DNA of 64,000 nucleotides, taken from sequence record OR844650.1, one strand, 5' to 3'. Under the pieces are notes generated by a model that had not been told where the DNA came from, did no database searches, and worked only from the letters and a program-made list of their open reading frames with translations. Made by a program: the position numbers and the translations under genes. Below, piece by piece: positions 12,934-34,549 of the stretch (positions are counted from its first letter, which is position 1; each line of letters starts with the position of its first letter).

Positions 12934-13124
12934 TAACATTTTATTCGTAATACCCCTTTATCGAAGTCGCTAAGGTTACCCGCCCTTTAGCCCCCTACGC
13001 ATTTTGCCATAGTCCAATCCCTTTTATTTCAAAAAAGTCAAGGGATTACCTATGCATTTTTTTAACGCATAATTTTAAAAACGCCTTGACTTTTTTCTGA
13101 ATCAGTACTAGATCCCTTTACGCA

Positions 13125-13334
13125 TTAATCCTTCGTTACGCTAACGATTATCTGTGTATCCCCGTAGTCCTGCCATACTTCCACGCCATCGGTCGCCCTG
13201 GTTAGTCGTGCTGTCATCTGCTTAATGGTCTTAGGCTTTAGTGGAACCTGTTGCAGTACTGTACGCATAGCATCATTGACGTTATCATGTACGCCTGCAA
13301 TAGTACCTAGAACGCTGTATACTGTATAGAACAT
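13125..13334 (-). CDS. Early hypothetical protein
   Basis: 69 aa, AGGAGG RBS. Confidence 0.75.
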   Translation of the reverse strand: MFYTVYSVLGTIAGVHDNVNDAMRTVLQQVPLKPKTIKQMTARLTRATDGVEVWQDYGDTQIIVSVTKD

Positions 13335-13402
13335 ATGTATGCCCTCCTGATATAGTTAAGGCCGCTACAAGGCGGCCTATGATGTTTGGTGATGTGTAAC
13401 GC

Positions 13403-13804
13403 TTACAGTCCTAAGATAGTGCGTGCTTCGTTACGTTCCGTACACAGCTGCATGATGTGAGCAAGTAAGTCCTTGCTAATGTATCCGGTGTTCATAGCTT
13501 CACGAATAGATACATCATAAGCACCGAACCCCGTGCGAACGATACGCACATCATTCAGGTTAGTATTATAGATACCGCCGAGATCAACGGCTTCGAATAC
13601 TACATCAACAGAATATTCATTGTTGCCATCGTGGAAGTTTTCCAGTGCAATAGTATTGGATACCGCCCAACGTTTGCAGTTTCCAATGATGCGGCACTGT
13701 TCCGGTTGGATAGTACCATTACTTACAGCGTACTCCAGTGCATCTTTACCGAAAGTCCGAGCCAGTACTAAAACGTCAGCGAAGGAATTGATTGAGAAGG
13801 TCAT
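13403..13804 (-). CDS. Early hypothetical protein
   Basis: Start MTFSINS after AAGGAG, downstream of promoter/stem-loop cassette. Confidence 0.8.
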   Translation of the reverse strand: MTFSINSFADVLVLARTFGKDALEYAVSNGTIQPEQCRIIGNCKRWAVSNTIALENFHDGNNEYSVDVVFEAVDLGGIYNTNLNDVRIVRTGFGAYDVSIREAMNTGYISKDLLAHIMQLCTERNEARTILGL

Positions 13805-13893
13805 GATAAAACTCCTTAATTTAGGAGGGAGAACCATTTCCCCCTCTCTATGTAAAACATTATACTTGATTCTAAGTACTATGCAAGTACTTT

Positions 13894-14226
13894 TTACATT
13901 TTAATACCTGGATTCAGATAGCGGTGAGAACCATATTCTGGATCGGTTTCGGTCCAGTACTGTAAATCGATAGTACCTTTCGCGTTAATCTTGTCTACCA
14001 GCTTATTCATCTTAGCGTATACTACGTCAGCATCGATGCGTTTAAAGCCAGTAGCTTTAGTGAAGTAGTAGTGATTTGCTTCACTATCATTAAGGATATA
14101 CCGAGCACCGTTTGCAGTCTGTGCGATAATGATTGAGTATTCTACTTCCCGATCCAGACCGTCGATGAATACAGATGAAACATTGGTACGGATGAAAGCT
14201 TTAACGATAGCGATTGAAGTACTCAT
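13894..14226 (-). CDS. Early hypothetical protein
   Basis: 110 aa, AGGAG RBS, own promoter. Confidence 0.8.
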   Translation of the reverse strand: MSTSIAIVKAFIRTNVSSVFIDGLDREVEYSIIIAQTANGARYILNDSEANHYYFTKATGFKRIDADVVYAKMNKLVDKINAKGTIDLQYWTETDPEYGSHRYLNPGIKM

Positions 14227-14329
14227 TTTGAATCTCCTAACTTTGTGGGCCGTCGCACCATTGCCGCCCTACGAGATACATTATTGCAGTACTGATATAC
14301 TTTGTCAATACTTTTTTTATTAATAGTTT

Positions 14330-14415
14330 TCACCCCACCAGCAGATAGTTACTCACCGTTATTAACTATATATTTTAGATACACTCCTGCACCCAGTGGG
14401 CTAGTTTTTGTCTAT
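14330..14415 (-). ncRNA. Putative small RNA or leader, CCCANNGGGTGC family copy A
   Basis: TTGACT-17-TATTAT promoter at 14422-14450, no ORF downstream, GCCCACTGGGTGC at 14389-14401. Confidence 0.4.
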
Positions 14416-14472
14416 GCGTATATAATAGCAAAGGGACTGACCGGAGTCAATCCCTTTTTTTATTCTTTTTTG

Positions 14473-14673
14473 TTAGATGATTCTCCAATCTTCTACGATC
14501 ATGGTAAGATAACGGACCATCGATTCAAGTGATTCGAATTCCCGATAGTCTGCCGCTCCACCAGCGGTACAAGTACAGCCGATTAAACCATTTTGTAATT
14601 CCTTAATCTGTACATCGATAAGGTTGGCTTTAGCTTCTTTCAGTACTTCAACCAGGGCGATAGCGATAGACAT
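14473..14673 (-). CDS. Early hypothetical protein
   Basis: 66 aa behind cassette. Confidence 0.75.
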   Translation of the reverse strand: MSIAIALVEVLKEAKANLIDVQIKELQNGLIGCTCTAGGAADYREFESLESMVRYLTMIVEDWRII

Positions 14674-14762
14674 AATGTTTTACTCCAAACTATTGACGGG
14701 AGAACTATTCCCCCGCTCTATGTAAAACATTATACATTACTTGTTAGTACTGTCAAATAGTT

Positions 14763-15020
14763 TTATGAAATATCTTCGATGTAGTCGGCCCATTTCATTT
14801 TTTCAGTACTGTCAATGGCTACCGGATTATTTGGATCAAACCATTCACCATTACCGCAGTACATACCAACGGCTACGGTTTTATAGCCATCCTGGGCCGT
14901 ACTCCACGACATTGCACGATAGATATGGCCTTTAACTGGTTGCAGTACTGGTAACGTTTTATGGTCTTCTACGTAGGCCATAGCTTGAGGATTTACCCGA
15001 TATTGTGTGAATTGTTCCAT
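14763..15020 (-). CDS. Early hypothetical protein
   Basis: 85 aa, own promoter. Confidence 0.75.
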   Translation of the reverse strand: MEQFTQYRVNPQAMAYVEDHKTLPVLQPVKGHIYRAMSWSTAQDGYKTVAVGMYCGNGEWFDPNNPVAIDSTEKMKWADYIEDIS

Positions 15021-15096
15021 GATGTTTCCCCTTGTAGTTAGTAAAGTTATTACATCAGTACTATCAAGCTATGTCAATAGTACTGAAATAAAACTT

Positions 15097-15321
15097 TTAG
15101 ATTAGATTATTGATGCCGTTGATGGTAGACTCGCTTTCTTCTTTCTCCCATTGGCGGTAGTACTTCCATGCTTCATGATATGTGGCGATTAGTTCATCTT
15201 TTTGATCCTGAGTACATGCCAGTACTGAATCACGGTGAGCGGTGTTATAGATAGAATCGAATGATTTCTTCTCTTCTGCCAGGTTAGCTACTTCCCGCAT
15301 CAGTTCATCAAAGTTAGCCAT
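15097..15321 (-). CDS. Early hypothetical protein (acidic, helical)
   Basis: 74 aa behind cassette. Confidence 0.75.
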   Translation of the reverse strand: MANFDELMREVANLAEEKKSFDSIYNTAHRDSVLACTQDQKDELIATYHEAWKYYRQWEKEESESTINGINNLI

Positions 15322-15388
15322 TTTATTACTCCTTTTAGTGGGGGAGGATATCTCCCCCTATGCAAAACATTATACTTTGTTTTAGTTA

Positions 15389-15652
15389 TTATGCAAGTAC
15401 TTTTTTCATATAAAGATTATATTCTACACCGCCGTAACCTTCTACGATGATATGTTTTGCGTTATCACGTTTGCACATAGTGAAACCGTTGTTGATGTGT
15501 TCTGCATTTTCCAGGGCGACATCACCGATAGCGGCACATACGGCACTAATAACAGTATTCCGCAAAGTACTGGTATCATTAGCGGTCATAGTAGTTTGCA
15601 GTACTACGTTGTCGTATACGTGTGCATTGATAGTGATTTCGATAGTGTTCAT
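15389..15652 (-). CDS. Early hypothetical protein
   Basis: 87 aa, CAGGAG RBS behind cassette. Confidence 0.75.
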   Translation of the reverse strand: MNTIEITINAHVYDNVVLQTTMTANDTSTLRNTVISAVCAAIGDVALENAEHINNGFTMCKRDNAKHIIVEGYGGVEYNLYMKKVLA

Positions 15653-15738
15653 GGTGTATCTCCTGGACTGGCGGGAGAACTATTCCCCCGCTCTATGTAA
15701 AACATTATACGTTAATCTAACTACAATGCAAGTACTTT

Positions 15739-15930
15739 TTAAATTTTATTTCCGATATAGTCCGGTCTATTCTTTTCGGTCATACGCTTTGCTAATGTTT
15801 GCATATGGCTTATTGCGTTTAATGTGTCTTCCTCCAGGGATGAATCAACATAATCAGGATCATTCTTCACCTTGCAATGATTATGATAGCGTAGTACTGC
15901 CAGTACTTTTTTAACTTCTTCTACTGTCAT
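15739..15930 (-). CDS. Early hypothetical protein
   Basis: 63 aa, coupled to upstream gene. Confidence 0.7.
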   Translation of the reverse strand: MTVEEVKKVLAVLRYHNHCKVKNDPDYVDSSLEEDTLNAISHMQTLAKRMTEKNRPDYIGNKI

Positions 15931-16199
15931 AATAAGTACCCCACTTCGTTAGCTTTCAGGTTAGTATCAATCATCAGTGGATTTTTGTAGTTCACAAAAC
16001 GATTAGTTTTCTCGATAGCGAATCCCATATAATCCAGCTTACTAACAGTACATTCATTCTTAAAAACTTCTTTCGCTGCATCGATGGCTGATTGCATGGA
16101 TAACCGACCATCTAAATTAATGTTTCCAAATGATCCACCAGCAGAAGTAGGATTACCGTTCATATCTTTAATGATCATAGTAGCGGAGTAGCTGGACAT
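15927..16199 (-). CDS. Early hypothetical protein
   Basis: 90 aa behind cassette. Confidence 0.75.
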   Translation of the reverse strand: MSSYSATMIIKDMNGNPTSAGGSFGNINLDGRLSMQSAIDAAKEVFKNECTVSKLDYMGFAIEKTNRFVNYKNPLMIDTNLKANEVGYLL

Positions 16200-16286
16200 A
16201 ATTTTGTTTCCTTTTAGTATCGGGGAGAACTATTCTCCCCTTGATGTAAACTATTATACAGTACTGATATACTTTGTCAAATACTT

Positions 16287-16694
16287 TTATTCGCCCATAT
16301 AGATTAGATTATCATCGCCTACATAGGGATCGCAAACGTTGATTTCTTCGCAGTACTTAGTGAATACATCGCCATAGTGACCTAAACCACGATCCCAAAA
16401 ACCAGTTCCGTGACCTTCGCGGGTAAGGAACAGATCATGACCAGCTTGCTCATAACCGTAATCAATAAACATACCGCGAACTACTTCCAGATCATTACCG
16501 TGTTTCTCAATGAAGCGAGAACATGCAATCACCGCCGCTTGACGTGCTTCATCAGATAACTCATAATCTTCCAGGTAATCGCCGTTATCATTATGTACAG
16601 TACTGAATTGCATAGCTTCAATGTAAGCTACAACCATTGCAGCATGATTTTTATCGTTAGTGATGTTCCGAGCGAGATTAGTAGTAGTAGACAT
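16287..16694 (-). CDS. Conserved phage early protein with GHDLFLTREGHGTGFWDR motif
   Basis: Motif recalled from a widespread uncharacterised phage family; behind cassette. Confidence 0.8.
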   Translation of the reverse strand: MSTTTNLARNITNDKNHAAMVVAYIEAMQFSTVHNDNGDYLEDYELSDEARQAAVIACSRFIEKHGNDLEVVRGMFIDYGYEQAGHDLFLTREGHGTGFWDRGLGHYGDVFTKYCEEINVCDPYVGDDNLIYMGE

Positions 16695-16777
16695 GATTTT
16701 ATTCCTTATTGTATTGGGGAGAACTATTCTCCCCTTGATGTAAACTATTATACAGTACTGATATACTTTGTCAATAC

Positions 16778-16999
16778 TTAATTACGTTTAAAATGATATG
16801 TGCCTTTATCATCCTGTACGCCCCACACTGATTTACCATCAACACCAGTGAAACCGGATTGTAATTCAATATGGAAACCATTATTATCAACTACAAAAAC
16901 TTTTTTATTTTCATCCCGATAACATTGATATTCTGAATCAACATTAAAGGCCGCATCATTCAGAAGATTGGAAGCGTAAATGCAAGTCATTGTAGTCAT
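16778..16999 (-). CDS. Early hypothetical protein
   Basis: Start MTTMTC after AAGGAA RBS. Confidence 0.75.
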   Translation of the reverse strand: MTTMTCIYASNLLNDAAFNVDSEYQCYRDENKKVFVVDNNGFHIELQSGFTGVDGKSVWGVQDDKGTYHFKRN

Positions 17000-17094
17000 G
17001 ATTTTATTCCTTATTACCAGGGAGAACCATTTCCCCCTCTCTATGTAAAACATTATACTTGATTCTAAGTACAATGCAAGTACTTTTTATCAAA

Positions 17095-17167
17095 TAGTTT
17101 TCAGTACTGAATACTTATATAATAGATACACTTCCGCACCCTATGGGTCAGTGAGTTATCTCTCAAT
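17095..17167 (-). ncRNA. Putative small RNA or leader, CCCANNGGGTGC family copy B
   Basis: Promoter 17174-17202; ACCCATAGGGTGC at 17136-17148; TGAG-AGATAA-CTCA hairpin. Confidence 0.4.
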
Positions 17168-17220
17168 GAATATATAATAGCAAAGGGACTGACCGGAGTC
17201 AATCCCTTTTTTAATCTTTT

Positions 17221-17805
17221 TTATCGTGTTACCTTACTTGCTTCTACATCACGCTTTTTATAGTACTGATTCCAGATATTGCGGGTTAAACCGTAATCAA
17301 GTACTTTAATAAGGCCGTTGCGATCCTGGCCGATATTCTGTTTTCTGATATCTCTTATCGTTAGTGTTGACAGTGTATCATCAACGTGTTGTAGTGCATC
17401 AGCAAAGCGGTGCTGGCGTTCAATTGCATTACGTTTAATATTGTACTTTAATTCGTTGCACGCGTTAACGTGCTTTACACTGCCTTTACTTGCAGTACTC
17501 AACCGATCCATAACGATAAACATATTATCAGGATCGCATAAATGCATATGCACCTTTGCAAAGTACTGTTTCAATTGAGGGCGGTCATAGTCTAAAAAAT
17601 TCCATACCTTACATTCAGTTTCATTTTGTTCTACACCCGCATCACAATTGGCGACCTTAATCACTAACCGATCATTTAAAGCGAATACAATACGGGAAGA
17701 ACCCGCACCGATGATCTCCAGACCAGCTAACCGACAAGCTGAAAGGATCTCTTTGTTGGTTTCCATTTCTGACAGGGTACGGATGAATTTAGTATAATTA
17801 CGCAT
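17221..17805 (-). CDS. Protein kinase-like (Ser/Thr kinase fold)
   Basis: Gly loop IGAGSSRIV, VIKVA, helix-C Glu, catalytic DIRKQN, DYG; start MRNYTK. Confidence 0.8.
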   Translation of the reverse strand: MRNYTKFIRTLSEMETNKEILSACRLAGLEIIGAGSSRIVFALNDRLVIKVANCDAGVEQNETECKVWNFLDYDRPQLKQYFAKVHMHLCDPDNMFIVMDRLSTASKGSVKHVNACNELKYNIKRNAIERQHRFADALQHVDDTLSTLTIRDIRKQNIGQDRNGLIKVLDYGLTRNIWNQYYKKRDVEASKVTR

Positions 17806-17836
17806 TGCATGTTCTCCTTGAGTTAATGAAACTATC

Positions 17837-18079
17837 TTACAGTACTTTACTATCAATGGCAACCACTTTTTTCACACTAACCGCGTGAATCACTTCCTTA
17901 GTGTTTTTAGTACTGAATACTTTCGCTGTTCCTTGTTCTACTGCAATGCGATAACGACCGTTAACATCAACCATATTAATAAAGTCCGGTGTACTAAACC
18001 GAGTAGTACGGCATTTCAGTACTGTTAACAGTTCCACCAGCGATGTAGTTTCTTTGATACGTTTTTCTAAAGTAATCAT
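17837..18079 (-). CDS. Early hypothetical protein
   Basis: Start MITLEK; upstream region duplicated at 18360-18411. Confidence 0.7.
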   Translation of the reverse strand: MITLEKRIKETTSLVELLTVLKCRTTRFSTPDFINMVDVNGRYRIAVEQGTAKVFSTKNTKEVIHAVSVKKVVAIDSKVL

Positions 18080-18136
18080 TTTGTTTTCCCCGTGTTGGTA
18101 TGTACATATAGTACTAAAACATTTGAGTACTGTCAA

Positions 18137-18355
18137 TTAGATAATTGCATATTTCTTTAAAGATAATGCGTCTTGGGTTGGCTGATACTCAATGCCGTTA
18201 CCGTTATCTACTTTAACTAATAAACCTTTGTCAATTAGTTTTTTAATAGTCCTTTGGCCTTGTTGAAAATTGGTAAAATGTGAATCATTACGAAAGGTAT
18301 AACCGTGCTTAACTGCTTCATCAATAGTTTTCTTTTCGATTTTAGATAATTTCAT
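18137..18355 (-). CDS. Small basic protein, possible winged-helix
   Basis: Start MKLSK; TIKKLIDKGLLVK pattern. Confidence 0.65.
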   Translation of the reverse strand: MKLSKIEKKTIDEAVKHGYTFRNDSHFTNFQQGQRTIKKLIDKGLLVKVDNGNGIEYQPTQDALSLKKYAII

Positions 18356-18408
18356 TTTGTTTCTCCCGTGTTGGTATGTGTACATAATACTAAAACAATT
18401 GAGTACTG

Positions 18409-18663
18409 TCAACGTGATATTAGTTTTATTTTCTTATTATATTGTTGATGTTCATAAAGGTTTATCTTTCCTGTGTTCTCTATTACTATTCTGTTGTTAG
18501 TGTCTACATCGATTACACGCAGTTTTCCGTTGCTTAACTTCCTTGGTAATAGGTTACCATTAATAAACTCATTAGCAAGCTGTACGGCCTTTGTGATGAT
18601 TCTCTGTGGTGCTTTATAGTGTACCCGCAAGATATTATCTTTAGATAGTTGTACCTTAATCAT
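18409..18663 (-). CDS. Possible ParE/RelE-like small basic protein
   Basis: LRVIDV..NRIV...G....YEHQQYNK resembles prophage ParE-like proteins ending in SHExYN (recalled pattern). Confidence 0.45.
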   Translation of the reverse strand: MIKVQLSKDNILRVHYKAPQRIITKAVQLANEFINGNLLPRKLSNGKLRVIDVDTNNRIVIENTGKINLYEHQQYNKKIKLISR

Positions 18664-18725
18664 TTTAGTTTATCCTATAAAAAAGGCGGGAACTGATCCC
18701 GCCGTGTTGTTAGTACTGCAAGTTA

Positions 18726-19130
18726 TTAGATAACCTGGCGGCGTTTACTGTATACTGTTACACGATTACCCTTACGGTCGTGTCGGATCTCTTTCTGGTT
18801 GCGAACCAGTTCACTTGGACGCTTAAGGTTTGCCAGGTGATCCGCGTGAGTCCAAGCGGTATGGTTTGTCTGTACTTTGATATCAGAATCAGCGATAAAT
18901 TCATCTTGTGCGTTAAGTACTGCCGCCAGTAAATCCGCTCGTTTTAGTTCTGCTGCTGTTAGTACTGGCTCCGGTGAATTCACGATATCAGAGATTTCTT
19001 TGAACTGTACGGCCCAGCGTTGACCTTTCGGTGCATCTTTGCCCATGTCTTTAAATGCTGCTCCTTCCTCGCGTGCAACAATACGGGCAGCTTCACGGGT
19101 AGCGTAGAATTTAGTAATCATGGTATACAT
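18726..19130 (-). CDS. Early hypothetical protein, paralogue of 31151-31417
   Basis: ATRE.AR..AR..GA.FKDMG...G.RWA and DRKGNRVTVY shared. Confidence 0.8.
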   Translation of the reverse strand: MYTMITKFYATREAARIVAREEGAAFKDMGKDAPKGQRWAVQFKEISDIVNSPEPVLTAAELKRADLLAAVLNAQDEFIADSDIKVQTNHTAWTHADHLANLKRPSELVRNQKEIRHDRKGNRVTVYSKRRQVI

Positions 19131-19216
19131 CCTATTAGTTGAGTTAGTACTACAAGTTAGAGTCTATTATAAAGTACTATCTGGGCAATGTCAAATAGTA
19201 CTTTAAATGGATTCTA

Positions 19217-19540
19217 TTACATGTCTTTCTTACGTTTTACATCGTAGTAGCGAACTGTTATTTCTTTGTTAATCTCTTTTTCGATGCGGTGAATAACTTT
19301 TTCTTTCGGGTTGAAACCTATAACGGTTTCTTTAATGATCTCCAAGCCCGTGTATTCTCCTTGTGTACCGTAACCGTAAGTAAAGGTTTCATGTCCCAAG
19401 TCTTCCCAGCGGTCGCCAATTAACGCGGACACGTAGCAAGAGTGGTAAGTGTTACCGTTCCGATCAGTCCAGCGATTAACTTTAATGTCAAAGGAGGTTA
19501 CAATTTTCAGTTCTACTTTCTGGGTAAGGATCATAGCCAT
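19217..19540 (-). CDS. Early hypothetical protein, paralogue of 25604-25927
   Basis: RWTDxxGNTYHSC and FTYGY, ends VKRKKD(M/L). Confidence 0.8.
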   Translation of the reverse strand: MAMILTQKVELKIVTSFDIKVNRWTDRNGNTYHSCYVSALIGDRWEDLGHETFTYGYGTQGEYTGLEIIKETVIGFNPKEKVIHRIEKEINKEITVRYYDVKRKKDM

Positions 19541-19627
19541 TTTTATTTCTCTCTCTTTGTTAGGAGGGGAACCATTCCCCTCGCTTGATGTAAACTATTA
19601 TACAGTACTAAGATACTTTGTCAATAC

Positions 19628-19810
19628 TTATTTTTTGGAAAGTTTACGCATTAATTCTACGCTTTCTTGTGAACGTTTTGCTACCTGGCAAGCTGTATGG
19701 GCAGTAAACATTTTTGTATAGTCTGACGCTTTGCCACCAAACCGAGCGGCACGTTCACGGGCACTTGGAACTAATACTATTTCTTTCTTGCAGATAGTGC
19801 ACTTAGCCAT
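19628..19810 (-). CDS. Small Cys/His (Zn-ribbon-like) early protein
   Basis: CxxC ... HxxC. Confidence 0.75.
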   Translation of the reverse strand: MAKCTICKKEIVLVPSARERAARFGGKASDYTKMFTAHTACQVAKRSQESVELMRKLSKK

Positions 19811-19897
19811 TTTAATTTCTCTCTTTTAGTTAGGAGGGGAACCATTTCCCCGCCTTGATGTAAACTATTATACAGTACTAAGATACTTTGTCAATAC

Positions 19898-20173
19898 TTA
19901 AGTATTGTAAATGTCGTGAATAGTGATAAAGTTTTTACGCCCGTAAACCTGTAAATCGGTATTAATGTAGTGCTTATCAAGTACATCCTCGACGCTTAAC
20001 GCGGTGTCGTGAATATCTTCGTAGAATTGGGGATCTACAATCTTGCTTAAGTCATCCGGCGTTAACTTATCGTTAAGCCATTGAACCGCCTGGATATCTG
20101 CATCACGTTTCCATTGTTCCAGGTTAGTAGTCAGTACTTGCTCGATTTCGTTAGCTGTCAGTAGAATCCGCAT
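19898..20173 (-). CDS. Early hypothetical protein
   Basis: 91 aa, own promoter 20207-20234. Confidence 0.75.
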   Translation of the reverse strand: MRILLTANEIEQVLTTNLEQWKRDADIQAVQWLNDKLTPDDLSKIVDPQFYEDIHDTALSVEDVLDKHYINTDLQVYGRKNFITIHDIYNT

Positions 20174-20239
20174 TTTAATGTTTCCTTATCAGTGGTTGAT
20201 GTAAGTATTATACTCGTTTACTTTCTATTGTCAAACTAT

Positions 20240-20317
20240 TTTATCAGGGGAGTTTTTCGTATGTCTTACTCCTGGACTACTTAACGGGGTTACTTGTTTC
20301 GTTCCCCGTCCTGATGT
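20240..20317 (-). ncRNA. Putative two-hairpin small RNA or long leader, copy 1 (copy 2 at 30470-30550)
   Basis: Strong promoter with no RBS/ORF before the next promoter; ACGGGG/CCCCGT stem. Confidence 0.4.
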
Positions 20318-20364
20318 AAAACATTATACTTGATTCTAAGTACAATGCAAGTACTTTTTAAAAA

Positions 20365-20434
20365 TAGTTTTCAGTACTAGCCACCAGCAAACAATAGATA
20401 CATTTATGCACCCTGTGGGCTGATTTGTTTCTAT
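20365..20434 (-). ncRNA. Putative small RNA or leader, CCCANNGGGTGC family copy C
   Basis: Promoter 20441-20469; motif 20408-20420; Chi at 20381. Confidence 0.4.
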
Positions 20435-20487
20435 GCGTATATAATAGCAAAGGGACTGACTGGAGTCAATCCCTTTTTCAAATATTT

Positions 20488-20637
20488 TTAAACTTCTTTC
20501 GGGTTGCGATAGGTGATAGCGTTCGGGTACATTTGTTTAATGTTATTCCATGCCTGGTTAACATTATAACCACTTGAGCGAATCAGTTGGTTACTACCGA
20601 CACCTTGAAACACTACTTCGAATAAGAATTCTTTCAT
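20488..20637 (-). CDS. Small early protein (49 aa, MKEFLFEVVF...)
   Basis: Hand translation; ATGA-coupled to upstream gene. Confidence 0.65.
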   Translation of the reverse strand: MKEFLFEVVFQGVGSNQLIRSSGYNVNQAWNNIKQMYPNAITYRNPKEV

Positions 20638-22017: not shown

Positions 22018-22023
22018 ATAATC

Positions 22024-26737: not shown

Positions 26738-26758
26738 AGTGATTCAGTACTTTAATTG

Positions 26759-27241
26759 TTATGCTTCAACTTTGCGATGAGATTCGATCCATTCCTCGCG
26801 AGTCATACCGCTGGCGTTAATCGCGTCCAGTACTACCGCAATACAGTTACCACGCACCGGAATCAGATATTCTTCCCCGTTGTCCAGTACTACCGCTACG
26901 CGTTCCTGAATCCATTTTTTGGCTTTTACTTCTGGCTTGTCTTCCCCATACTTAACCGCCAGGGCTTTTTGTGCCATCTCTGTAACTACTTCCAGATCCA
27001 ATCCAACTACTGCCGCCTGAATACTTTCGATTGTTGCTTGTAGTTCTGCTTCACGGGCCGCCTTTGCCGCTTCAATTTCTGCCGCTTTATTTGCTTGTAG
27101 TTCTTTCGCAGTACTGTACGCGATGTTAAAATTATTGCGTACCGCTTTCATGGTATCGTTATCCAGTTCAGCCAGGATCTCAGCCGCGACGTTAGTTTCA
27201 TTTGCTACCAGTGCTTTGATGAATGATTTTACATTAGCCAT
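26759..27241 (-). CDS. Coiled-coil early protein
   Basis: Start MANVK; Ala/Glu/Lys-rich helix. Confidence 0.8.
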   Translation of the reverse strand: MANVKSFIKALVANETNVAAEILAELDNDTMKAVRNNFNIAYSTAKELQANKAAEIEAAKAAREAELQATIESIQAAVVGLDLEVVTEMAQKALAVKYGEDKPEVKAKKWIQERVAVVLDNGEEYLIPVRGNCIAVVLDAINASGMTREEWIESHRKVEA

Positions 27242-27446
27242 TTTATAAATCCTCAATTAAAGTTTAGTTTACGTTTATTAGTGTATCAAAGTTTTCTCGA
27301 CGTGTCCAGTTTTTCGTTCGACTTACTGGCGGTCTACTTAGTGCTCCCCGTCTTGATGTAATACATTCTACGCTTTTCTGCGGTAATGTCAACTACTTTT
27401 TTAAAACTATTTTCAAAGTATCTCAGTACTACGATACTACAAAAAC

Positions 27447-27469
27447 AAAAAAAGCCCACCAGGTGGGCT
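27447..27469 (-). terminator. Intrinsic terminator
   Basis: AGCCCAC-CTG-GTGGGCT then long T run on minus strand. Confidence 0.75.
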
Positions 27470-27475
27470 ATGTAC

Positions 27476-27706
27476 TTAATCAGTGAGTAAAATATTAAAC
27501 ACTTTACCATTTAACGTTATTGGTGCACTGCTACCAGGCTCAAGATCCGTTAGTATACCTGCAATCGCTTTATCATTGGCGACCTTTCCAGTGTCCAACA
27601 GTACGACAGTACTGATAAGATTAACGCTCGTTTCAATATCATAATGCACGGCGTTAAGTAGTTGTGTAGTACTGCTTTCGTTAAGTAAAACAATTCGCTT
27701 AGTCAT
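27476..27706 (-). CDS. Early hypothetical protein
   Basis: 76 aa. Confidence 0.7.
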   Translation of the reverse strand: MTKRIVLLNESSTTQLLNAVHYDIETSVNLISTVVLLDTGKVANDKAIAGILTDLEPGSSAPITLNGKVFNILLTD

Positions 27707-27727
27707 GATGTTACCCCGTAGTATCTA

Positions 27728-28027
27728 TCAACGGCAATTAATAACGCCAGTATGAGTTACTTTCTCAGTATCCATAACAGTGACCGAACCGCGTTTAGTA
27801 CTTGCATCGTAATAAATTGTCGTGCTACCTTTTTCGTCTTCTTCATGGAACGGCCCGTTTTTAAATGCTTCCGGCTGGATCTCTAAATCCTTTAATACAA
27901 TCTCGCCAGTTCTTTCATCGGTCATTGCAACAGTGCACTGAATGAATTTTTCACTACTTACATCTAATGACGCATTAACAGCGAAAGAGGAAACAGATAA
28001 AGCCAGGGCGATGATTGCAATTTTCAT
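27728..28027 (-). CDS. Exported early protein with signal peptide
   Basis: MKIAIIALALSVSSFAVNA signal-peptide pattern. Confidence 0.75.
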   Translation of the reverse strand: MKIAIIALALSVSSFAVNASLDVSSEKFIQCTVAMTDERTGEIVLKDLEIQPEAFKNGPFHEEDEKGSTTIYYDASTKRGSVTVMDTEKVTHTGVINCR

Positions 28028-28111
28028 TTGATTATCCTTAGTTACCAGGGGGAACCGCTCCCCCTTGCGATGTAAAATATTATACAGTACTAAAAACTAT
28101 TATCAAGTACT

Positions 28112-28348
28112 TTATGATTTTTTATAAAACATTTCAGCAGTGATATTTTTACCCGTTGGCTGTACTTTATCCAGAATTTTTTGATGCCCTGGCCGTCCAA
28201 ATGAATATGATCCGTAAACCGTAAACCAGTAGTTACCCTCAGTGTTTACATGTACAGCACAATAGGGAACGCCCCGCGATTCATCACTAGTAAAGTGTGC
28301 TACCGTTCCCGTTACATTCGAAGACGTTGATTTGATTTGTTCGACCAT
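28112..28348 (-). CDS. Early hypothetical protein
   Basis: 78 aa behind cassette. Confidence 0.7.
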   Translation of the reverse strand: MVEQIKSTSSNVTGTVAHFTSDESRGVPYCAVHVNTEGNYWFTVYGSYSFGRPGHQKILDKVQPTGKNITAEMFYKKS

Positions 28349-28491
28349 TTTCTTATTCCTTAGTTACCAGGGGAACCGCTCCCCCTATGCAAAACATTAT
28401 ACGCGTTTAAAAACTAATTGCAAGTATTTTAATAAAAAGTATTTGAAAAATAGTTGTTGACAAGTGCATCCAGTACTGGCATAATTACTAC

Positions 28492-28600
28492 ATCAAGACG
28501 AAACAGTCACTAACCCACCGGGTGCCGAGATCCGTCTATTAAATGATTCAGTACTGAAAAAGTAACGGGGAGTTATTATCTCCCCGCGTTGTTATTTTGT
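28492..28600 (+). ncRNA. Putative plus-strand small RNA, CCCANNGGGTGC family copy G
   Basis: TTGACA-17-CATAAT at 28457-28485, motif 28513-28525, CGGGGAG/CTCCCCG hairpin 28566-28586; no ORF. Confidence 0.5.
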
Positions 28601-28813
28601 AAGGTATAAACAGAAGTCACCTTTATTTGCTACGCCGCCAGTGTAACGCGATGAATAGTTAGAAACGTCCTGGACTTCTGCTATTACCAGGGTATCATCA
28701 TTCAATTCGTCGCAGAAGCAAACGGCTGGATCTTGTACGCCGATTTTGTCGGCATGTTCCCGCATAGATTTAACCAGTGCTTCCAGTTGGGAAAGAGTAG
28801 TGATATTAGCCAT
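28592..28813 (-). CDS. Early hypothetical protein
   Basis: Start MANITT after GAGGA. Confidence 0.7.
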   Translation of the reverse strand: MANITTLSQLEALVKSMREHADKIGVQDPAVCFCDELNDDTLVIAEVQDVSNYSSRYTGGVANKGDFCLYLTK

Positions 28814-28900
28814 TTTATTTTCCTCATTACCAGGGAGAACCATTTCCCCCCTCTATGTAAACCATTATACAGTACTGAAAACTAATTGCAAGTACTTTTT

Positions 28901-29104
28901 TTAATTTAATTGCTTTAAAACATAATCAAAGACACCACGCACATCATTGATCATTGCCGTGCGGTTAGCAGGTAACGCATCAGGATCGCCACTATCCCAG
29001 GCATTGATAAAACTCCCCAAATCATGAAAGATTTTATTCTGTAAGCCGATTAACTGCAATTCTTTTTCTTCAAGCTCTTTGATACGTTCAATTAAATCAC
29101 TCAT
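28901..29104 (-). CDS. Early hypothetical protein
   Basis: Start MSDLIE after AAGGA. Confidence 0.7.
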   Translation of the reverse strand: MSDLIERIKELEEKELQLIGLQNKIFHDLGSFINAWDSGDPDALPANRTAMINDVRGVFDYVLKQLN

Positions 29105-29121
29105 TATATAATCCTTAGTAC

Positions 29122-29403
29122 TTAACTGTAAGATCCGCAACGGTCGCAGTAGTGCCCCTCGTCATCGTCAACGAATTGACCAACGAAATTATCTACTTTC
29201 GCTTTCAGGTTATTATAATCGTTTTCTACTTCCTTTAAACGCTTCTGGTAGTATTCCAGTGCTTTAAGATATGCCGCGTCAGCAGTTTTCTCCTGCATAG
29301 CTAAATTCATGCCACGCGTTTCATCGTACAGCCAAAAACCATCGGTGCACTGGCTAATAGATAATGACTTGCTTAGTACTGTATAGTTAATTACTTTACT
29401 CAT
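29122..29403 (-). CDS. Early hypothetical protein
   Basis: Start MSKVIN after GAGGG. Confidence 0.75.
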   Translation of the reverse strand: MSKVINYTVLSKSLSISQCTDGFWLYDETRGMNLAMQEKTADAAYLKALEYYQKRLKEVENDYNNLKAKVDNFVGQFVDDDEGHYCDRCGSYS

Positions 29404-29461
29404 TAGATAAACCCTCAATAAAGGCGGGAACCATTCCCCGCCATTGTTACAGTACTGAATA

Positions 29462-29701
29462 TTACATTCCAACCATTGCAGCACGGATCGCCGTAGTGCT
29501 ATACTTGAATCCGTCCGGCGTTGTAGTAGTACCGTTGGCTTTTAATCTGCGGTACATACATTCCGCAGCAATATCTTTAGTTCTACTTTGTGCGATGCAA
29601 CTTTGAGCAAGCCGATACAATGACTCACCGTTATTAATCCATAAGGAAACATTCCAATGAGTTTTGTTTTTGTGCCCGTTGTAAGTTTTAGTACTAGCCA
29701 T
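29462..29701 (-). CDS. Early protein, paralogue of 31501-31740
   Basis: GHKNKTHWNVSLWINN and identical TPDGFKYSTTAIRAAMVGM end. Confidence 0.8.
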   Translation of the reverse strand: MASTKTYNGHKNKTHWNVSLWINNGESLYRLAQSCIAQSRTKDIAAECMYRRLKANGTTTTPDGFKYSTTAIRAAMVGM

Positions 29702-29793
29702 TTTTTTTAATCCTCGTTTGAGCGGGGAACCACTCCCCGCCTCGATATAAAGTATTATACGCCTTTAAACTTAGTTTGCAAGTACTTTTTAAA

Positions 29794-30405
29794 TTAATAT
29801 TCGATTGATTCTACTACACCATCAATGACATTGAATTGATATTCGTTACCCTCAATCAGTGCCGTAATGTTTTCAGTAGTGAATTGATCCTCATATGCAT
29901 TCTCTAAATCACGGTACAACTTGCGGGACAATTCACGAATAGTGTCAGTGAGTAGTTCCTCAAGCTCATTAACTAACGTTTCTTGTTTTGCGGTTAAATC
30001 AGTGTAAGCCGATTCAATGTACCCGCTTACAGTGTTCTCATGCGAGTAGTGGGAGTGAGAACGCTTTACACTCATCGCCAAATCATCTTCATTCAGCAAG
30101 TGACGGATTGAGCGATACTTAGTTAATGCTCTTACCTTGCGTAAAAACTTCACTGCGTCAACGTGGTCAGTACTGATTGATGCACCGTCACCCTGGGACC
30201 AAAAACCACTGAATTGTATTTCAGCGTCATTAATGCCATATTCCGGTAGTACTGTTTCTTTATAGTATTCAATTTCACTTTCAGAAAAATAATCATCGTT
30301 TAAGTTTTTTTCACGTTCCCGAACCAGTTCGATAGCTGACGTTTTTTGTTCTGCGTTCAATTCAGAAAAATCCATAACGAAAGTAGTAGTAGTGATAGTT
30401 TTCAT
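29794..30405 (-). CDS. Acidic conserved phage early protein (FSGFWSQGDGAS motif)
   Basis: 203 aa, Glu/Asp-rich; motif recalled from a widespread phage family. Confidence 0.8.
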   Translation of the reverse strand: MKTITTTTFVMDFSELNAEQKTSAIELVREREKNLNDDYFSESEIEYYKETVLPEYGINDAEIQFSGFWSQGDGASISTDHVDAVKFLRKVRALTKYRSIRHLLNEDDLAMSVKRSHSHYSHENTVSGYIESAYTDLTAKQETLVNELEELLTDTIRELSRKLYRDLENAYEDQFTTENITALIEGNEYQFNVIDGVVESIEY

Positions 30406-30469
30406 TTTGTAACTCTCATTCAGTAGTTGATGTAAGTATTATACGCTTTTAAAAACATTTGTCAAACTA

Positions 30470-30550
30470 TTTTATCAGGGGAGTTTTTCGTGTGCCTTAC
30501 TCCTGGGCTACTTAACGGGGAGTTACTTATTTCGTTCCCCGTCCTGATGT
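30470..30550 (-). ncRNA. Putative two-hairpin small RNA or long leader, copy 2
   Basis: Near-identical to 20240-20317; ACGGGGA/TCCCCGT stem. Confidence 0.4.
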
Positions 30551-30664
30551 AAAACATTATACGCCTTTAAACATAGTTTGCAAGTACTTTTTAAAAATAG
30601 TTTTCAGTACTGAATATTAAAAAAAAGTATTGACAGCATTATCAAGTACTGGCATAATATACCC

Positions 30665-30767
30665 CATGACAACAGCTAACCCACCGGGTGCACAATTGTA
30701 ACTGTAATAAACTACTTTTTCTATAGATACACTCCCGCACCCTATGGGCTACGGCTTATCTGCCAAT
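30665..30767. ncRNA. Convergent pair of motif-bearing transcripts (copy H plus, copy E minus)
   Basis: Plus promoter 30630-30658 with motif 30679-30691; minus promoter 30774-30802 with motif 30737-30749. Confidence 0.45.
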
Positions 30768-30832
30768 GAATACATTATGCCAGTACTGACAAAATAAGTC
30801 AATACCGGCAATTGTAAAGATTTGTAAACTGC

Positions 30833-31063
30833 TTATACTGCAATCGCGTCCAGGCTATAATAATAATAAGTGCCGTATTGGTGTACTTTATTACCTTTTA
30901 TTTCAGTACTGAATGAATCCGAACGGTTTGCATATGATGTTAATTTAAAGTACTTTGATTTGCTGATACGTTGCCATACACCGCAGATCCGCTGTAAGTA
31001 AGTAGTTTTATTCGTGGTAGTATCTTTTACGGTTTTAACTTCAGTCATATACATATTAGTCAT
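30833..31063 (-). CDS. Early hypothetical protein
   Basis: 76 aa behind cassette. Confidence 0.7.
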   Translation of the reverse strand: MTNMYMTEVKTVKDTTTNKTTYLQRICGVWQRISKSKYFKLTSYANRSDSFSTEIKGNKVHQYGTYYYYSLDAIAV

Positions 31064-31150
31064 TTTTATTACTCCAGGTTATAGGCGGGATGTGTTCCCG
31101 CTCTAGATGTAAAACATTATACGCCATTAAACATAGTTTGCAAGTACTTT

Positions 31151-31417
31151 TTATTCAAGTACTGCAATCTTTTTAGTACGGTACACGGTCACGCGGTTGC
31201 CCTTTCGGTCGAGCTTTATTTCTACCACTCGACGCGATACACTATCGGGACTTTTTAAGGCCGCTAACCAGTACTGTAATGATCTGGCTGTACTACGCTT
31301 TACAATGGCCCAACGTTCACCACTTGCCGATCCCGCACCCATATCTTTAAACGTTGCCCCGTCCTGGCGAGCGGCGATCCGAGCTTGTTCACGCGTCGCA
31401 AAATACTTAATATTCAT
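31151..31417 (-). CDS. Early protein, paralogue of 18726-19130
   Basis: Start MNIKY. Confidence 0.75.
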   Translation of the reverse strand: MNIKYFATREQARIAARQDGATFKDMGAGSASGERWAIVKRSTARSLQYWLAALKSPDSVSRRVVEIKLDRKGNRVTVYRTKKIAVLE

Positions 31418-31500
31418 GCTGTTGCCCTTATCGTTGGTGTATGAATAAAACACTATTATAAAGTACTATCACCGTGCAATAGTACTTTAAATAAATTCTA

Positions 31501-31740
31501 TTACATTCCAACCATCGCCGCACGGATCGCAGTAGTGCTATATTTGAATCCGTCCGGTGTTTTATCTTGTCCAGTCTGTTCTAAAAATAGCATCATATGA
31601 CGGGCCGCATCATTGCGATTAGTGCTATCGTTAATAAAGTCCTGGGCCAACCGGTACAATGATTCATCGTTATTAATCCAAAGGCTTACATTCCAATGAG
31701 TTTTGTTTTTGTGACCTAAGAACATTTTTGATTTTGCCAT
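31501..31740 (-). CDS. Early protein, paralogue of 29462-29701
   Basis: Start MAKSK after GAGGA. Confidence 0.8.
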   Translation of the reverse strand: MAKSKMFLGHKNKTHWNVSLWINNDESLYRLAQDFINDSTNRNDAARHMMLFLEQTGQDKTPDGFKYSTTAIRAAMVGM

Positions 31741-31823
31741 TTTTTTTAATCCTCTTATATAGTGGGGAACTATTCCCCACCTGATGTAAAACATTATACG
31801 CTTTTAAACTTAGTTTGCAAGTA

Positions 31824-32057
31824 CTATTTTTTCAGTACTGGTAAACCTTTGATCTCACCTGGCTGTACTTCCTCAAAGGCGACCGCCATCATACGGCTAT
31901 CATCTTCCTTACATTCTTCCATCGCATCACAAAAATGATTAATAACGTCCGGTGCAACGTCAACCACATCAAACAAGCCAACCTCAGTGCAACGGCTTAA
32001 AGCGTTTAATAGGTCAGTCAGTGCAACGGATTGAGAAACAGTTAAAATAGTACTCAT
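31824..32057 (-). CDS. Early hypothetical protein
   Basis: 77 aa behind cassette. Confidence 0.7.
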   Translation of the reverse strand: MSTILTVSQSVALTDLLNALSRCTEVGLFDVVDVAPDVINHFCDAMEECKEDDSRMMAVAFEEVQPGEIKGLPVLKK

Positions 32058-32151
32058 AAAATTAATCTCTTAATTTTAGTGGGGAACTATTCCCCACCTG
32101 ATGTAAAACATTATACGCCATTAAACATAGTTTGCAAGTACTTTATTAAAC

Positions 32152-32514
32152 TTATTTGTAAATTTTGCCACTGTCAGCCCATACCAGGAAACGAGGCATA
32201 TTATCCCATGCATCTTGTTTTAAGTTTAAGCCGTGCAATTCCTCAGTTGTTGCCATCCCTGGTACTGGCTTACTACACACCGCGAAATTTTCGCCCATGT
32301 ACTGATAAACCATCGTCAAATCATTTGAGATCATTACATGGATCATTGAATCAAGCATCAAAGTAGCGGCGTATTGTTCACGCTTAAGCGGCAACATTGC
32401 AATAAGTTCCCGATAAGCTGCAATGTGAATTTTTACAGTTTCAGCCGGAAGACCTTTCATCTCTTCGCGGAAGTTTACCAGGTTAAGCATGATTTTAGTG
32501 ATTTGAGTCGCCAT
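32152..32514 (-). CDS. Early hypothetical protein
   Basis: Start MATQI behind cassette. Confidence 0.75.
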   Translation of the reverse strand: MATQITKIMLNLVNFREEMKGLPAETVKIHIAAYRELIAMLPLKREQYAATLMLDSMIHVMISNDLTMVYQYMGENFAVCSKPVPGMATTEELHGLNLKQDAWDNMPRFLVWADSGKIYK

Positions 32515-32907
32515 CGTTTTAATCTCTCTTAATGTGTAGCGGGAAGTGTTCCCGCTCTCGATGTAAAACATTATACGCCTTTAAACATAGTTTGCAAGTA
32601 CTTTCTACATGTACTTTTAAAATAGTTTTCTTTCTATATAGGGGAACTATCATTCAGTACTGCAACCATCCAGGGGAACTATCTTTCTATATAGGAGTAC
32701 TATTATTCAGTACTGAATCAACCAAATCACTACTACACCCCGTAAAACGGCCTCAGACGCATTCTAACGCATTAATACACCTAAGCTATACATTTGCACC
32801 ATTCCAATCATTCCAGGGCTTTACGGGCCGTTTAAACGCGTTAAATTATTTTCAATTATTTTGTTTTTAGGTATTGACTTGATCCTGAAAAAGCGTATAA
32901 TTACTAC

Positions 32908-33200
32908 ATAGACGCGAGAAAGCGGAAACCCCAGAGGGTGCGGAATTACGCCCAAAATTCAAGATATAAAAAAAGGATACACTCCCGCACCCTAGCAGGT
33001 AAACGCACTTTCTCAGTACTGAAATATAGTACCATAGTACGGCCCAGGATAGCAAGCAAATTAATTAAAACTTTTTTGCTTCCAGGGTATTGCTTTATTT
33101 TTTCAGTACTGTATAATAGTTCCATCAAGTCGAGAAAGACTCAAGCCCACCGGGTGCATAGTTACGCCCAAAATTCAGTACTGAAAAAATTTTTAAAAAA
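32908..33200 (+). ncRNA. Two tandem plus-strand motif-bearing transcripts (copies I, J) with opposing degenerate copy F
   Basis: Promoters 32874-32901 and 33090-33117; motifs 32929-32941 and 33145-33157, each followed by TTACGCCCAAAATTC. Confidence 0.4.
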
Positions 33201-33340
33201 TATCCGTCCAGGCCGTTGACATTGCCCCCAGTTTATAAGATAATGATTCCAGATTCAGAAAAATCTAACTTCAGATACTGCGGGGAAACTATCCCCACGC
33301 GGTAGGGGAACTATTGGAAAAACAAAATAAAATTTTGATT

Positions 33341-33452
33341 TAGCCGTCTATACTTCCAGACGTGTAACCATCTAGCCGTTTAGCCGTCCAAACGTCTAGC
33401 CATCCAGCCATCCAGAAATCTAGCCGTTTAGCCGTCTAGATGGATAGCCATC
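33341..33452 (+). repeat. 8-bp periodic array, consensus TAGCCRTC
   Basis: Units in register at 33341, 33373, 33381, 33397, 33405, 33421, 33429, 33445. Confidence 0.8.
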
Positions 33453-33650
33453 TTTACTTCCAGACTTCTGGAGGGCTAGACATATCTACGTCCAAAATCC
33501 ATCCAGGGTAACTACACCCAAAATCCGTCAGTACTATACCATAGATCTATCTTTTGAAAGGGAGTATTCAGTACTGCCATCATAGCCCTCACTATGTTAC
33601 CCTAGGAGGATGAAGACCATCATGTAGTACTGAATACTGTTAGAGGGAAT

Positions 33651-33670
33651 CCACCAGCACAAGCTGGTGG
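33651..33670. other. Inverted pair of Chi octamers
   Basis: CCACCAGC-ACAA-GCTGGTGG. Confidence 0.8.
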
Positions 33671-34549
33671 CATAATGCTTTAGATTAAAATCAGTACTGA
33701 CACCATTCTGTTAATATCAGTACTGTTATTACGATTTTCATATGAGGTTCAAAAAGATGTACCACCACAGGAGGAACTATCTTTTCTGTACTGTCTCACG
33801 ACAGGAGGTAGAGTAAATGAATTGTTCGCAGCAACTCATCACCCTATGTAGAACATTATACAGTACTGAATCATAAAGTCAATAACTTTCTTTCATCTTT
33901 CAGTACTGATATTCTTGAGAACTACCCGACTACAAACATCATTATATCCCACAAATCATAAACGTCCCAACGTAAATTTCAACTTTCGAAGATCCAACTT
34001 TTATTTCATAGGTACTCCAAAATTTTTAGGATCGAGATTTAGGATGGAGTACTAACCAACTTTTTGCTGGAGCCTCAAGGGGTAATGGAATTTTACCCCG
34101 AAGGGTAAAGGGGTAATTGAAATTAAGGTGAAAGTAATAATTCAGTACTAATCATTGCGTGATTACTTTTGATTACATTTGATGTAATTTGCAAAATGGA
34201 AAAGGAGCTTGGAAACTACAAAGTACGGCAGACTTCCTCTGCCTACTTAGTGGCATATCGACACCTTCAGTACTGAATACTTTTAGGGCAGTACTGAATC
34301 CTTCCCTAGCATTCTTGAGTAATCTTGTCTATAATAATCAGTACTGAATCATATATAATCATTCTGTGATTCTACGGTGCTCATATAAATGTTTATATAT
34401 GATTACTTATGACTACATATGATTACGGGGTTTAGCCTGGGGAGAATCCTAGTGATCGCATTTGTCCAGGCTGAATTTTAACAATTCTTCTAATTGTTAA
34501 AGCCTGTCCAATGCTTTCCCTGCGGAGCTTCCCCTGTCTATATGTTGAA

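Follow-up and report, generated by a model that had tools for sequence, protein, structure and literature searches.

Introduction

Direct terminal repeats (DTRs) of about 20 kb have already been published for jumbo phages of the genus Asteriusvirus (2019, 2025, 2026) and for phage CBB (2017). The CBB repeat spans 22,456 bp, contains 51 open reading frames (ORFs), and was established by two-fold read depth and pulsed-field gel electrophoresis (PMC5259590). The authors of the G17 sequence inferred terminal redundancies of about 20 kb from sequence coverage (PMC6563267). A repeat of 20,668 bp was defined by PhageTerm in Sharanji, and one of 20,993 bp was found by PhageTerm and confirmed by restriction end fragments in fEgEco12 (PMC13070987). 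The Klebsiella jumbo phage fENko-Kae01, which has 28.6% average nucleotide identity to fEgEco12 (PMC13070987), carries a PhageTerm-defined repeat of 19,736 bp. In this study, we analysed the final 64 kb of the Escherichia phage record OR844650.1 (64,000 nucleotides, hereafter the window) and an island of GC-richer DNA at 12973-34247 within it, which we interpret as a single assembled copy of such a DTR.

Several phages offer comparisons for the contents and the handling of a long terminal repeat. In the Bacillus phage SPO1, a large virulent myophage, small early genes with many strong host-sigma promoters lie inside a terminal redundancy of more than 10 kb, and this host-takeover module has been shown experimentally to be expressed early and to shut off the host. 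Phage T7 enters the cell by transcription-assisted DNA uptake. T5 has a long terminal repeat whose 1.2-kb Repeat Region 3 overruns the repeat by 270 bp (Davison preprint). The PeSL cassettes of T4-type phages are defined by a stem-loop upstream of a promoter (PMC4122927). Host RecBCD recognises Chi on the strand that has its 3' end at the entry point (PMC12315714). In P1, Chi sites are clustered near the terminal repeats and have been proposed to drive RecBCD-dependent circularisation; for P1 and the LLS-type lambdoid phages, Chi has been proposed to promote either recombination between the terminal repeats or a recombination-dependent mode of growth. The Sharanji genome includes genes for a RecA-like recombinase and an exonuclease of its own.

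Materials and methods

Proteins were compared with Pfam and PHROGs. Promoters were scored by the number of matches out of 12 to the sigma-70 -35 and -10 boxes, at cut-offs of 9/12, 10/12, and 11/12. Chi counts were compared with isocompositional octamers and with Markov models of order 1-4, and the positions of alignment breakpoints with 2000 simulations. Genome-wide counts cover the window and six further segments of the public record, each of which was analysed separately. Feature coordinates, given as window positions, are collected in Table 1.

Results

Terminal repeat and genome ends

The segment 12000-36000 of the window was 100% identical to Escherichia phages ECO103 4-12-1 (OR844650.1) and EC22.5-2 (OR845138.1), both of which are unannotated records of 351,992 bp. 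This segment was 90-97% identical to many PBECO4/121Q-like jumbo coliphages, which are placed in Asteriusvirus in the records of these relatives, and the block was found at the same place in 36-37 related records.

The ends of three relatives mapped to the same two bases of the window, and the fixed termini are thus kept across G17, fEgEco12, and vB_Ec-M-J. For vB_Ec-M-J (OQ718158.1, linear, 378,573 bp), GenBank annotates direct terminal repeats at 1-21525; its right end (378573) aligned to window position 12973 and its position 1 to 34247. The ends of the fEgEco12 record, 374733 and 1, likewise aligned to 12973 and 34247, and the G17 record starts (position 1) at 12973 and ends (370817) at 34247. 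The two end copies were 100% identical within each of G17 (20,668 bp), fEgEco12 (20,993 bp), and vB_Ec-M-J (21,525 bp), and both junction segments were present twice in ten deposited relatives. The junction at 12973 was 100% identical to that of G17, and the junction at 34247 was 99.3-99.7% identical to those of fEgEco12 and WPEC5. By arithmetic on match coordinates rather than at base level, WPEC5, WPEC3, E9.1, CRJP21, and BF17 also appear to start and end at these sites.

We interpret the island at 12973-34247 as the collapsed DTR of this phage. In short-read assembly, the two identical ends would have been merged into one copy, and the circle would have been cut open at another place. Judged by homology, the virion genome would in fact be about 373 kb, with its ends at 12973 and 34247, and many sister records of 347-356 kb have probably been collapsed alike. 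Taken as a whole, the best explanation of the locus is a single assembled copy of an Asteriusvirus DTR of about 21.3 kb that doubles as an early module and has Chi-assisted recombination between its repeats, to which we assign a probability of roughly 0.85.

A preliminary description of the window, made from its letters, had placed the genome ends near 12.9 kb and 34 kb, and this agrees with the mapped termini. Its left island border (12950) lies 23 bp from 12973, but its right border (34540) takes in about 290 bp of unique non-coding DNA. Its figure of roughly 20 kb for the repeat of CBB was correct, and the read-depth check that it proposed has been carried out in the relative G17 (PMC6563267). 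The interpretation given in that description is supported in part. Its structural half is fully supported; of its functional half, an early module read by host polymerase is very probable, and the term "first-injected" and the role as an anti-defence payload are speculation. The core finding itself is already known, since such DTRs have been published for the genus and for CBB and are annotated in GenBank at homologous coordinates.

The DTRs of G17, Sharanji, fEgEco12, and vB_Ec-M-J resemble the island in identity (about 93-100%), termini, length (20.7-21.5 kb), and gene order, apart from local replacements. OR844650.1 differs from these phages in being unannotated, in holding a single collapsed copy, and in several single-gene replacements. 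The GNAT acetyltransferase gene of the vB_Ec-M-J and fEgEco12 DTRs is also absent here (region 21437-21720; compared stretch L001 12201-12557). The repeats of CBB and fENko-Kae01 are likewise about 20 kb long; they carry some 50 small genes in one orientation, RpoD-like promoters, and non-coding DNA on the outer side. They differ from the island in having no nucleotide-level similarity to it and in that most genes are unshared; CBB was compared through its published description. fENko-Kae01 further resembles the island in having raised GC, an array of Chi sites that includes an inverted pair near the end, many AGTACT copies, a kinase-like gene, and the CCCA-NN-GGGTGC element described below.

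Inverted repeats were seen at the tips. The perfect inverted repeat that the preliminary description had noted at the left edge is present (Table 1). At 34208-34247 (minus strand, read inward), two 6-bp arms set 5 nt apart form an inverted repeat at a distance of 4 nt from the mapped terminus, and the fENko-Kae01 terminus likewise starts with an 8-bp inverted repeat.

Table 1. Features of the window in and around the predicted direct terminal repeat
Feature	Position	Strand	Remarks
Single assembled copy of DTR (predicted)	12973..34247	.	21,275 bp; ends mapped from three relatives
Perfect inverted repeat	13031..13096 (13031-13043 / 13084-13096)	.	13-nt arms, 40-nt spacer; 58-124 bp inside the 12973 end
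Array of 55 small genes	13125..33055	-	transcription from the 34247 side towards the 12973 side
Eight Chi sites	14335..26630 (starts 14335, 14558, 16135, 18034, 20381, 21282, 21995, 26623)	-	face the 12973 end
Composite element, five copies	14361-14457, 17108-17209, 20380-20476, 23849-23950, 30709-30802	-	hairpin, promoter, and core
Four-gene cluster: ParE-like, two paralogues of about 95 aa, kinase-like	17221..18663	-	Pfam; paralogue pair
Kinase-like protein, 213 aa	17221-17862	-	largest DTR protein; Pfam Pkinase E = 0.003, below curated cut-off
ParE-like domain protein	18409-18663	-	Pfam ParE_like E = 6e-11
DksA/TraR-type C4 zinc-finger protein, 85 aa	21464..21721	-	Pfam zf-dskA_traR E = 1.1e-11; PHROG 54, DksA-like
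Inverted Chi pair	26623..26692 (26623-26630 minus, 26685-26692 plus)		in a 227-bp intergenic gap
Plus-strand CCCA-NN-GGGTGC copies	28474-28553, 30640-30719, 32890-32969, 33106-33185	+	promoter unit, then core
DUF1033	29122-29484	-	Pfam
DUF7249	29462-29701 and 31501-31794	-	Pfam
Two plus-strand promoter units	32867..33190	+	each followed by CCCA-NN-GGGTGC (cores at about 32930 and 33146)
Non-coding, repeat-rich DTR end	33056..34247	.	8 CAGTACTG palindromes, plus-strand promoter units, 8-mer array, Chi pair
Tandem array, unit TAGCCGTC	33341..33439	.	period 8, 12.4 copies
Inverted Chi pair, 4 nt apart	33651..33670		plus member 33663-33670 faces the 34247 end, 577 bp in
10-bp-period array, TGATTACATT-like	34160..34193	+	55-88 bp inside the 34247 terminus
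Non-coding unique DNA outside DTR, repeat-rich overrun	34248..34549	.	3 further CAGTACTG sites
Second copy of 10-bp-period array	34390..34423	+	143-176 bp outside the 34247 terminus

Composition and gene array

The GC content was 0.31-0.34 before 13 kb, 0.36-0.42 across 13-34 kb, and 0.335 thereafter, with a mean of 0.388 in the DTR. The island held 55-56 minus-strand ORFs with a median length of 85 aa. The GC-richer island and the roughly 55 short genes of the preliminary description were both recovered in these counts. The median intergenic gap was 80 bp in the DTR versus -10 and +7 bp in the two flanks, and the coding density was 73% versus 95% and 85%. Nearly all DTR genes were singletons, with four small paralogue pairs, and no paralogue family was common to the DTR and the flanks. 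At the level of the sequence, the repeat is shown to be a separate module, distinct in both composition and architecture.

Promoter cassettes and leaders

The island contained 104 promoter-like sites, where 63.7 ± 8.4 were expected, and 10 perfect TTGACA-N16/17-TATAAT promoters, all on the minus strand. Clear intrinsic terminators were fewer than promoter-like sites, numbering 23 on both strands where 13.3 were expected. Among the 41 intergenic gaps of at least 40 bp, 31 had a match of at least 9/12 and 25 a match of at least 10/12. About 60-75% of the genes have their own promoter, and the remainder are arranged in clusters of 2-4 genes; the abundant promoters of the preliminary description were reproduced, but its statement that nearly all genes have their own sigma-70 promoter goes too far. 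Sites of at least 11/12 had a density of 1.08 per kb in the DTR versus 0.26 per kb in the rest of the genome, and 10 of the 30 perfect sigma-70 sites of the genome fell in the DTR, which makes up 6% of it. The variant TTGCAA-N16-TATAAT occurred 12 times in the DTR and nowhere else in the 352 kb.

These cassettes of about 80 bp share a common order. An A/T-rich tract comes first, AGTAC then directly adjoins the -35 box (TTGCAA or TTGACA), and a spacer of 16 nt, in many cases with CAGTACTG at its end, leads to the -10 box TATAAT; a conserved leader, a Shine-Dalgarno sequence, and ATG follow. Among 41 minus-strand promoter-like sites, AGTACT stood at two fixed offsets (-27 and -7), abutting the -35 box in 12 sites and ending one base before the -10 box in 13. 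The leader of 16 cassettes opens with a G-rich stem-loop, and compensatory changes were found in five of its six stem pairs. The stem-loop sits between the -10 box and the Shine-Dalgarno sequence, as at 16200-16258, 19541-19602, and 22743-22801 on the minus strand; in short cassettes, its G-rich arm doubles as the Shine-Dalgarno site. No known RNA family scored above the gathering score in the island, and no tRNA was found there.

The promoters suit unmodified host RNA polymerase. The DTR genes are very probably read by this enzyme, and are hence early, at double dosage. In the proposed scheme, host polymerase would transcribe them at once on entry. About 55 ORFans behind host-type promoters at double dosage make the DTR a natural place to seek host-takeover functions. 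The closest functional analogy is the SPO1 module; the host is different, and for the present phage the early and shut-off role is a presumption.

The cassettes resemble the PeSL cassettes of T4-type phages in combining an AT-rich tract, a near-consensus sigma-70 promoter, a stem-loop, and a Shine-Dalgarno sequence before small ORFans in hyperplastic regions. They differ in the place of the stem-loop, which here follows the -10 box in 16 cassettes and overlaps the -35 box in the five composite elements.

The AGTACT motif was also abundant beyond the promoters. The 8-bp palindrome CAGTACTG occurred 64 times in the window versus about 1 expected, most densely at 13254-34346, and 204 times in the 352-kb genome. 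The AGTACT core was present 919 times genome-wide and 141 times in the DTR, where about half of the copies lie inside ORFs, and an excess of AGTACT was also seen in the distant phage fENko-Kae01. Titration of SlmA was considered, as the AGTACT core is shared with the SlmA site, but it was rejected: sites of the SlmA type (consensus from PMC3020112) numbered 1 versus 1.26 expected. A literature search for CAGTACTG returned only unrelated primer matches.

CCCA-NN-GGGTGC element

An invariant CCCA-NN-GGGTGC core was found in nine copies in the DTR, about 25 nt downstream of its own -10 box. In the five composite copies, a terminator-like hairpin carrying a TTGACT -35 box is followed by TATTAT and then by the core. 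The fENko-Kae01 DTR had eight copies; outside the DTRs, the core was nearly absent from both genomes. When viral contigs were scanned with a 16-mer version of the element, many single matches were obtained that are probably due to chance, so that only contigs with several matches are informative; the multi-copy matches were in genomes of jumbo size. An RNA hairpin was rejected as an explanation of the element, since its stem would have only four pairs without covariation while the core is invariant. An invariant core without covariation points to sequence-specific recognition rather than structure, and recognition is probably of that kind. It may act as a small RNA, as a site for a regulator, or in the manner of an origin.

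Chi sites

Chi occurred 15 times in the window, versus 0.76 expected, and 28 times in the whole genome. Eleven sites fell in the DTR, nine on the minus strand and two on the plus strand, as the polarised Chi sites of the preliminary description had implied. This number in 21.3 kb compares with 0.2-0.5 expected (at least 25-fold enrichment), and the density is 10-fold that of the rest of the genome. Coding-strand Chi ranked first among 168 isocompositional octamers in the DTR, with nine copies against a mean of 0.35, and the Markov models predicted 0.15-0.36 copies on the DTR coding strand. Seven of the 11 sites are intergenic, and the positions are conserved in vB_Ec-M-J and fEgEco12.

By the RecBCD rule, the enzyme coming from the 12973 end would recognise the nine sites on the minus strand, the first of them after 1,362 bp, and the two on the plus strand are oriented for entry at 34247. 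Each of these two belongs to an inverted Chi pair. The layout recurs in fENko-Kae01: the coding strand of its DTR bears 12 Chi and the opposite strand 2, only 2 are present in the next 25 kb, and an inverted Chi pair lies 484-503 bp from the outer DTR end. Recurrence in the absence of DNA similarity argues for selection.

RecBCD entering either free end would meet Chi within about 0.6-1.4 kb and would switch from degradation to RecA loading; the two repeats could then recombine to give a circularised genome or concatemers, as proposed for P1. With moderate confidence, and by analogy, Chi at both ends may thus convert RecBCD attack into recombination between the repeats. As in P1 and the LLS-type lambdoid phages, Chi is far above expectation near the packaged ends and is oriented for RecBCD coming from the nearest end. 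The present phage differs in that it is virulent and of jumbo size and that its repeats are exact, not of the headful kind; furthermore, the LLS class is without a recombination module, whereas Sharanji, a relative of the present phage, encodes a RecA-like recombinase. The layout offers a checkable idea of how a linear genome of 370 kb could survive RecBCD when it enters the cell and put the enzyme to use. The papers on fEgEco12 and fENko-Kae01 make no mention of Chi or RecBCD, and the Chi layout, the AGTACT-phased promoters, the leader stem-loop, and the invariant CCCA-NN-GGGTGC element appear to be undescribed in the literature searched.

A broader proposal can be advanced tentatively, at somewhat less than even odds. 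The Rak2-like DTR would be built to handle RecBCD: its outward Chi arrays, with an inverted pair that lies about 0.5 kb from one tip and is kept between genera without DNA similarity, would make this end-degrading host enzyme recombine the two repeats. The AGTACT copies phased at the -35 and -10 boxes and the CCCA-NN-GGGTGC core would be recognised by regulators still to be named or would take part in origin or processing functions.

Proteins encoded in the repeat

Matches to 47 PHROG families were obtained, and among the matches listed all were of unknown function. The exceptions to anonymity came mainly from Pfam (Table 1). The kinase-like protein shared 39% identity with a DTR-encoded protein of fENko-Kae01 labelled "putative protein kinase", and its weak PDB matches were without exception protein kinases, aligned over the catalytic-loop region. 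Of the labels carried by relatives ("DNA ligase", "spackle", "tail fiber protein", and "PRP4 kinase"), none was reproduced by Pfam, save for the weak kinase signal. The DTR probably includes host-modulating proteins, the candidates being the DksA-like zinc finger, the small kinase-like protein, and the ParE-like protein. No known anti-defence protein was recognised in the general Pfam and PHROG scans, no search aimed at anti-defence having been made.

Gene replacement between relatives

Alignments of the island to G17, vB_Ec-M-J, and fEgEco12 broke at 31 distinct places inside the repeat. Twenty-five of these breakpoints lay within 30 bp of an ORF end, versus 9.2 expected, a number reached in 0 of 2000 simulations, and several of the unaligned intervals comprised exactly one ORF. 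With breakpoints at ORF ends, the cassettes behave like the PeSL cassettes of T4-type phages (PMC4122927). The conserved cassettes may, with moderate confidence, mediate gene shuffling as recombination linkers, which would account for the gene-by-gene replacement between relatives.

Non-coding end region

The segment 33056-34549 is non-coding and dense in tandem arrays, palindromes, and inverted repeats; about 1.19 kb of it lies inside the DTR and about 300 bp outside. The tandem repeat that the preliminary description had reported at the right edge is the 8-bp-period array of this segment. The 1.2 kb of non-coding, repeat-rich DNA next to 34247, where arrays lie on either side of the cut, probably contains the signals for packaging or end formation, and the two 10-bp-period arrays are a candidate binding site for a packaging protein.

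Evidence against and alternative readings

Several observations count against an early, Chi-equipped DTR as the reading of this island. The repeat and its exact ends in this phage are taken from homology to relatives, so that a DTR in this particular phage stays an inference. No motif above chance was common to the two cut sites, where only chance-level 8-10-mers were shared. Twenty perfect sigma-70 sites lie outside the DTR, which is accordingly not the only candidate early region. Neither Pfam nor PHROGs gave a recognisable function for 47 of the 55 DTR proteins. The Chi strand is also the coding strand, and the coding strand is G-rich (isocompositional mean 0.35 versus 0.054), so part of the 9:2 polarity may be compositional. 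Finally, the recombinase of Sharanji means that dependence on RecBCD is not required.

The alternatives concern either the way in which the DNA enters the cell or the nature of the island. Which end enters first, and whether entry pauses, are matters of speculation. A T7-like, transcription-assisted entry, in which the 34247 end would go first and host RNA polymerase transcribing inward would draw the DNA in, is unlikely. It fits with the direction of all 55 DTR genes and of the 42 genes of the adjoining unique region (window 1-12905), which point away from the 34247 end, and with strong promoters that begin about 1.1 kb from the 34247 tip; however, the argument comes from gene orientation alone, and a contractile-tail jumbo phage need not use that mechanism.

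We regard as quite improbable a T5-like two-step entry, in which the DTR would be the first-step-transfer segment, transfer would stop in the untranslated region, and pre-early proteins would be needed for the rest. As in T5, the terminal repeat is long and packed with small genes behind host promoters, and an untranslated region dense in repeats spans the junction of repeat and unique DNA; the region of about 1.5 kb here, mostly inside the DTR with an overrun of about 300 bp, can be compared with Repeat Region 3. The present DTR is twice as long, however, and the paired DnaA boxes of the T5 stop region are absent: no TTWTNCACA box was found in 33056-34549, and the window had 6 versus 12.8 expected. 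No T5 pre-early function (A1, A2, or dmp) was named by Pfam or PHROGs among the 55 proteins, in scans that gave family summaries for most of them. Moreover, the repeat-rich region would be at the inner junction only if the 12973 end entered first, and the genes would then enter tail-first.

A headful, circularly permuted genome as in T4, with no fixed ends and the island as a mere early-gene region, is very unlikely: the group has T4-like structural and replication genes (PMC5259590) and the assembly closes as a circle, but the relatives show fixed termini by PhageTerm, two-fold depth confined to the block, and restriction end fragments. A horizontally acquired island or mobile element unrelated to the ends, with the repeats of relatives as assembly or annotation artefacts, would suit the distinct GC, the mosaic gene content, and the non-coding edges with repeats, yet it is already largely refuted and extremely improbable, given that the block keeps its place across the related records, that the repeat was reported by four laboratories with independent methods including restriction mapping, that the same architecture occurs in a different genus, and that no integrase or transposase domain was found among the DTR proteins with Pfam and PHROGs.

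Surroundings of the repeat

Tandem gene families were seen on both sides of the DTR. On the minus strand at 6904-12905, an array of 23 small paralogues (ORFs of about 70-90 aa), in which stop and start codons overlap, ends 67 bp before the DTR edge; no Pfam match was obtained for this family. Directly outside the other end, the minus strand at 34550-38903 carries small tandem paralogue families of ORFs of about 60 aa, with 6, 4, and 3 members. Precisely where the DTR ends (34000-34500), the GC skew jumps from about -0.15 to roughly +0.2. As the genes remain on the minus strand until 39341, the coding strand changes from G-rich within the DTR to C-rich immediately outside. The block of positive skew at 34-57 kb is unusual, the rest of the genome being negative on that strand. 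Farther out, the plus strand at 39426-57706 encodes 16 tandem paralogues of about 380 aa that contain RCC1-like repeats. Three Chi sites at 54204, 54459, and 54717 fall within ORF 54045-54782 of this region, and their 255-bp spacing suggests an internal DNA repeat.

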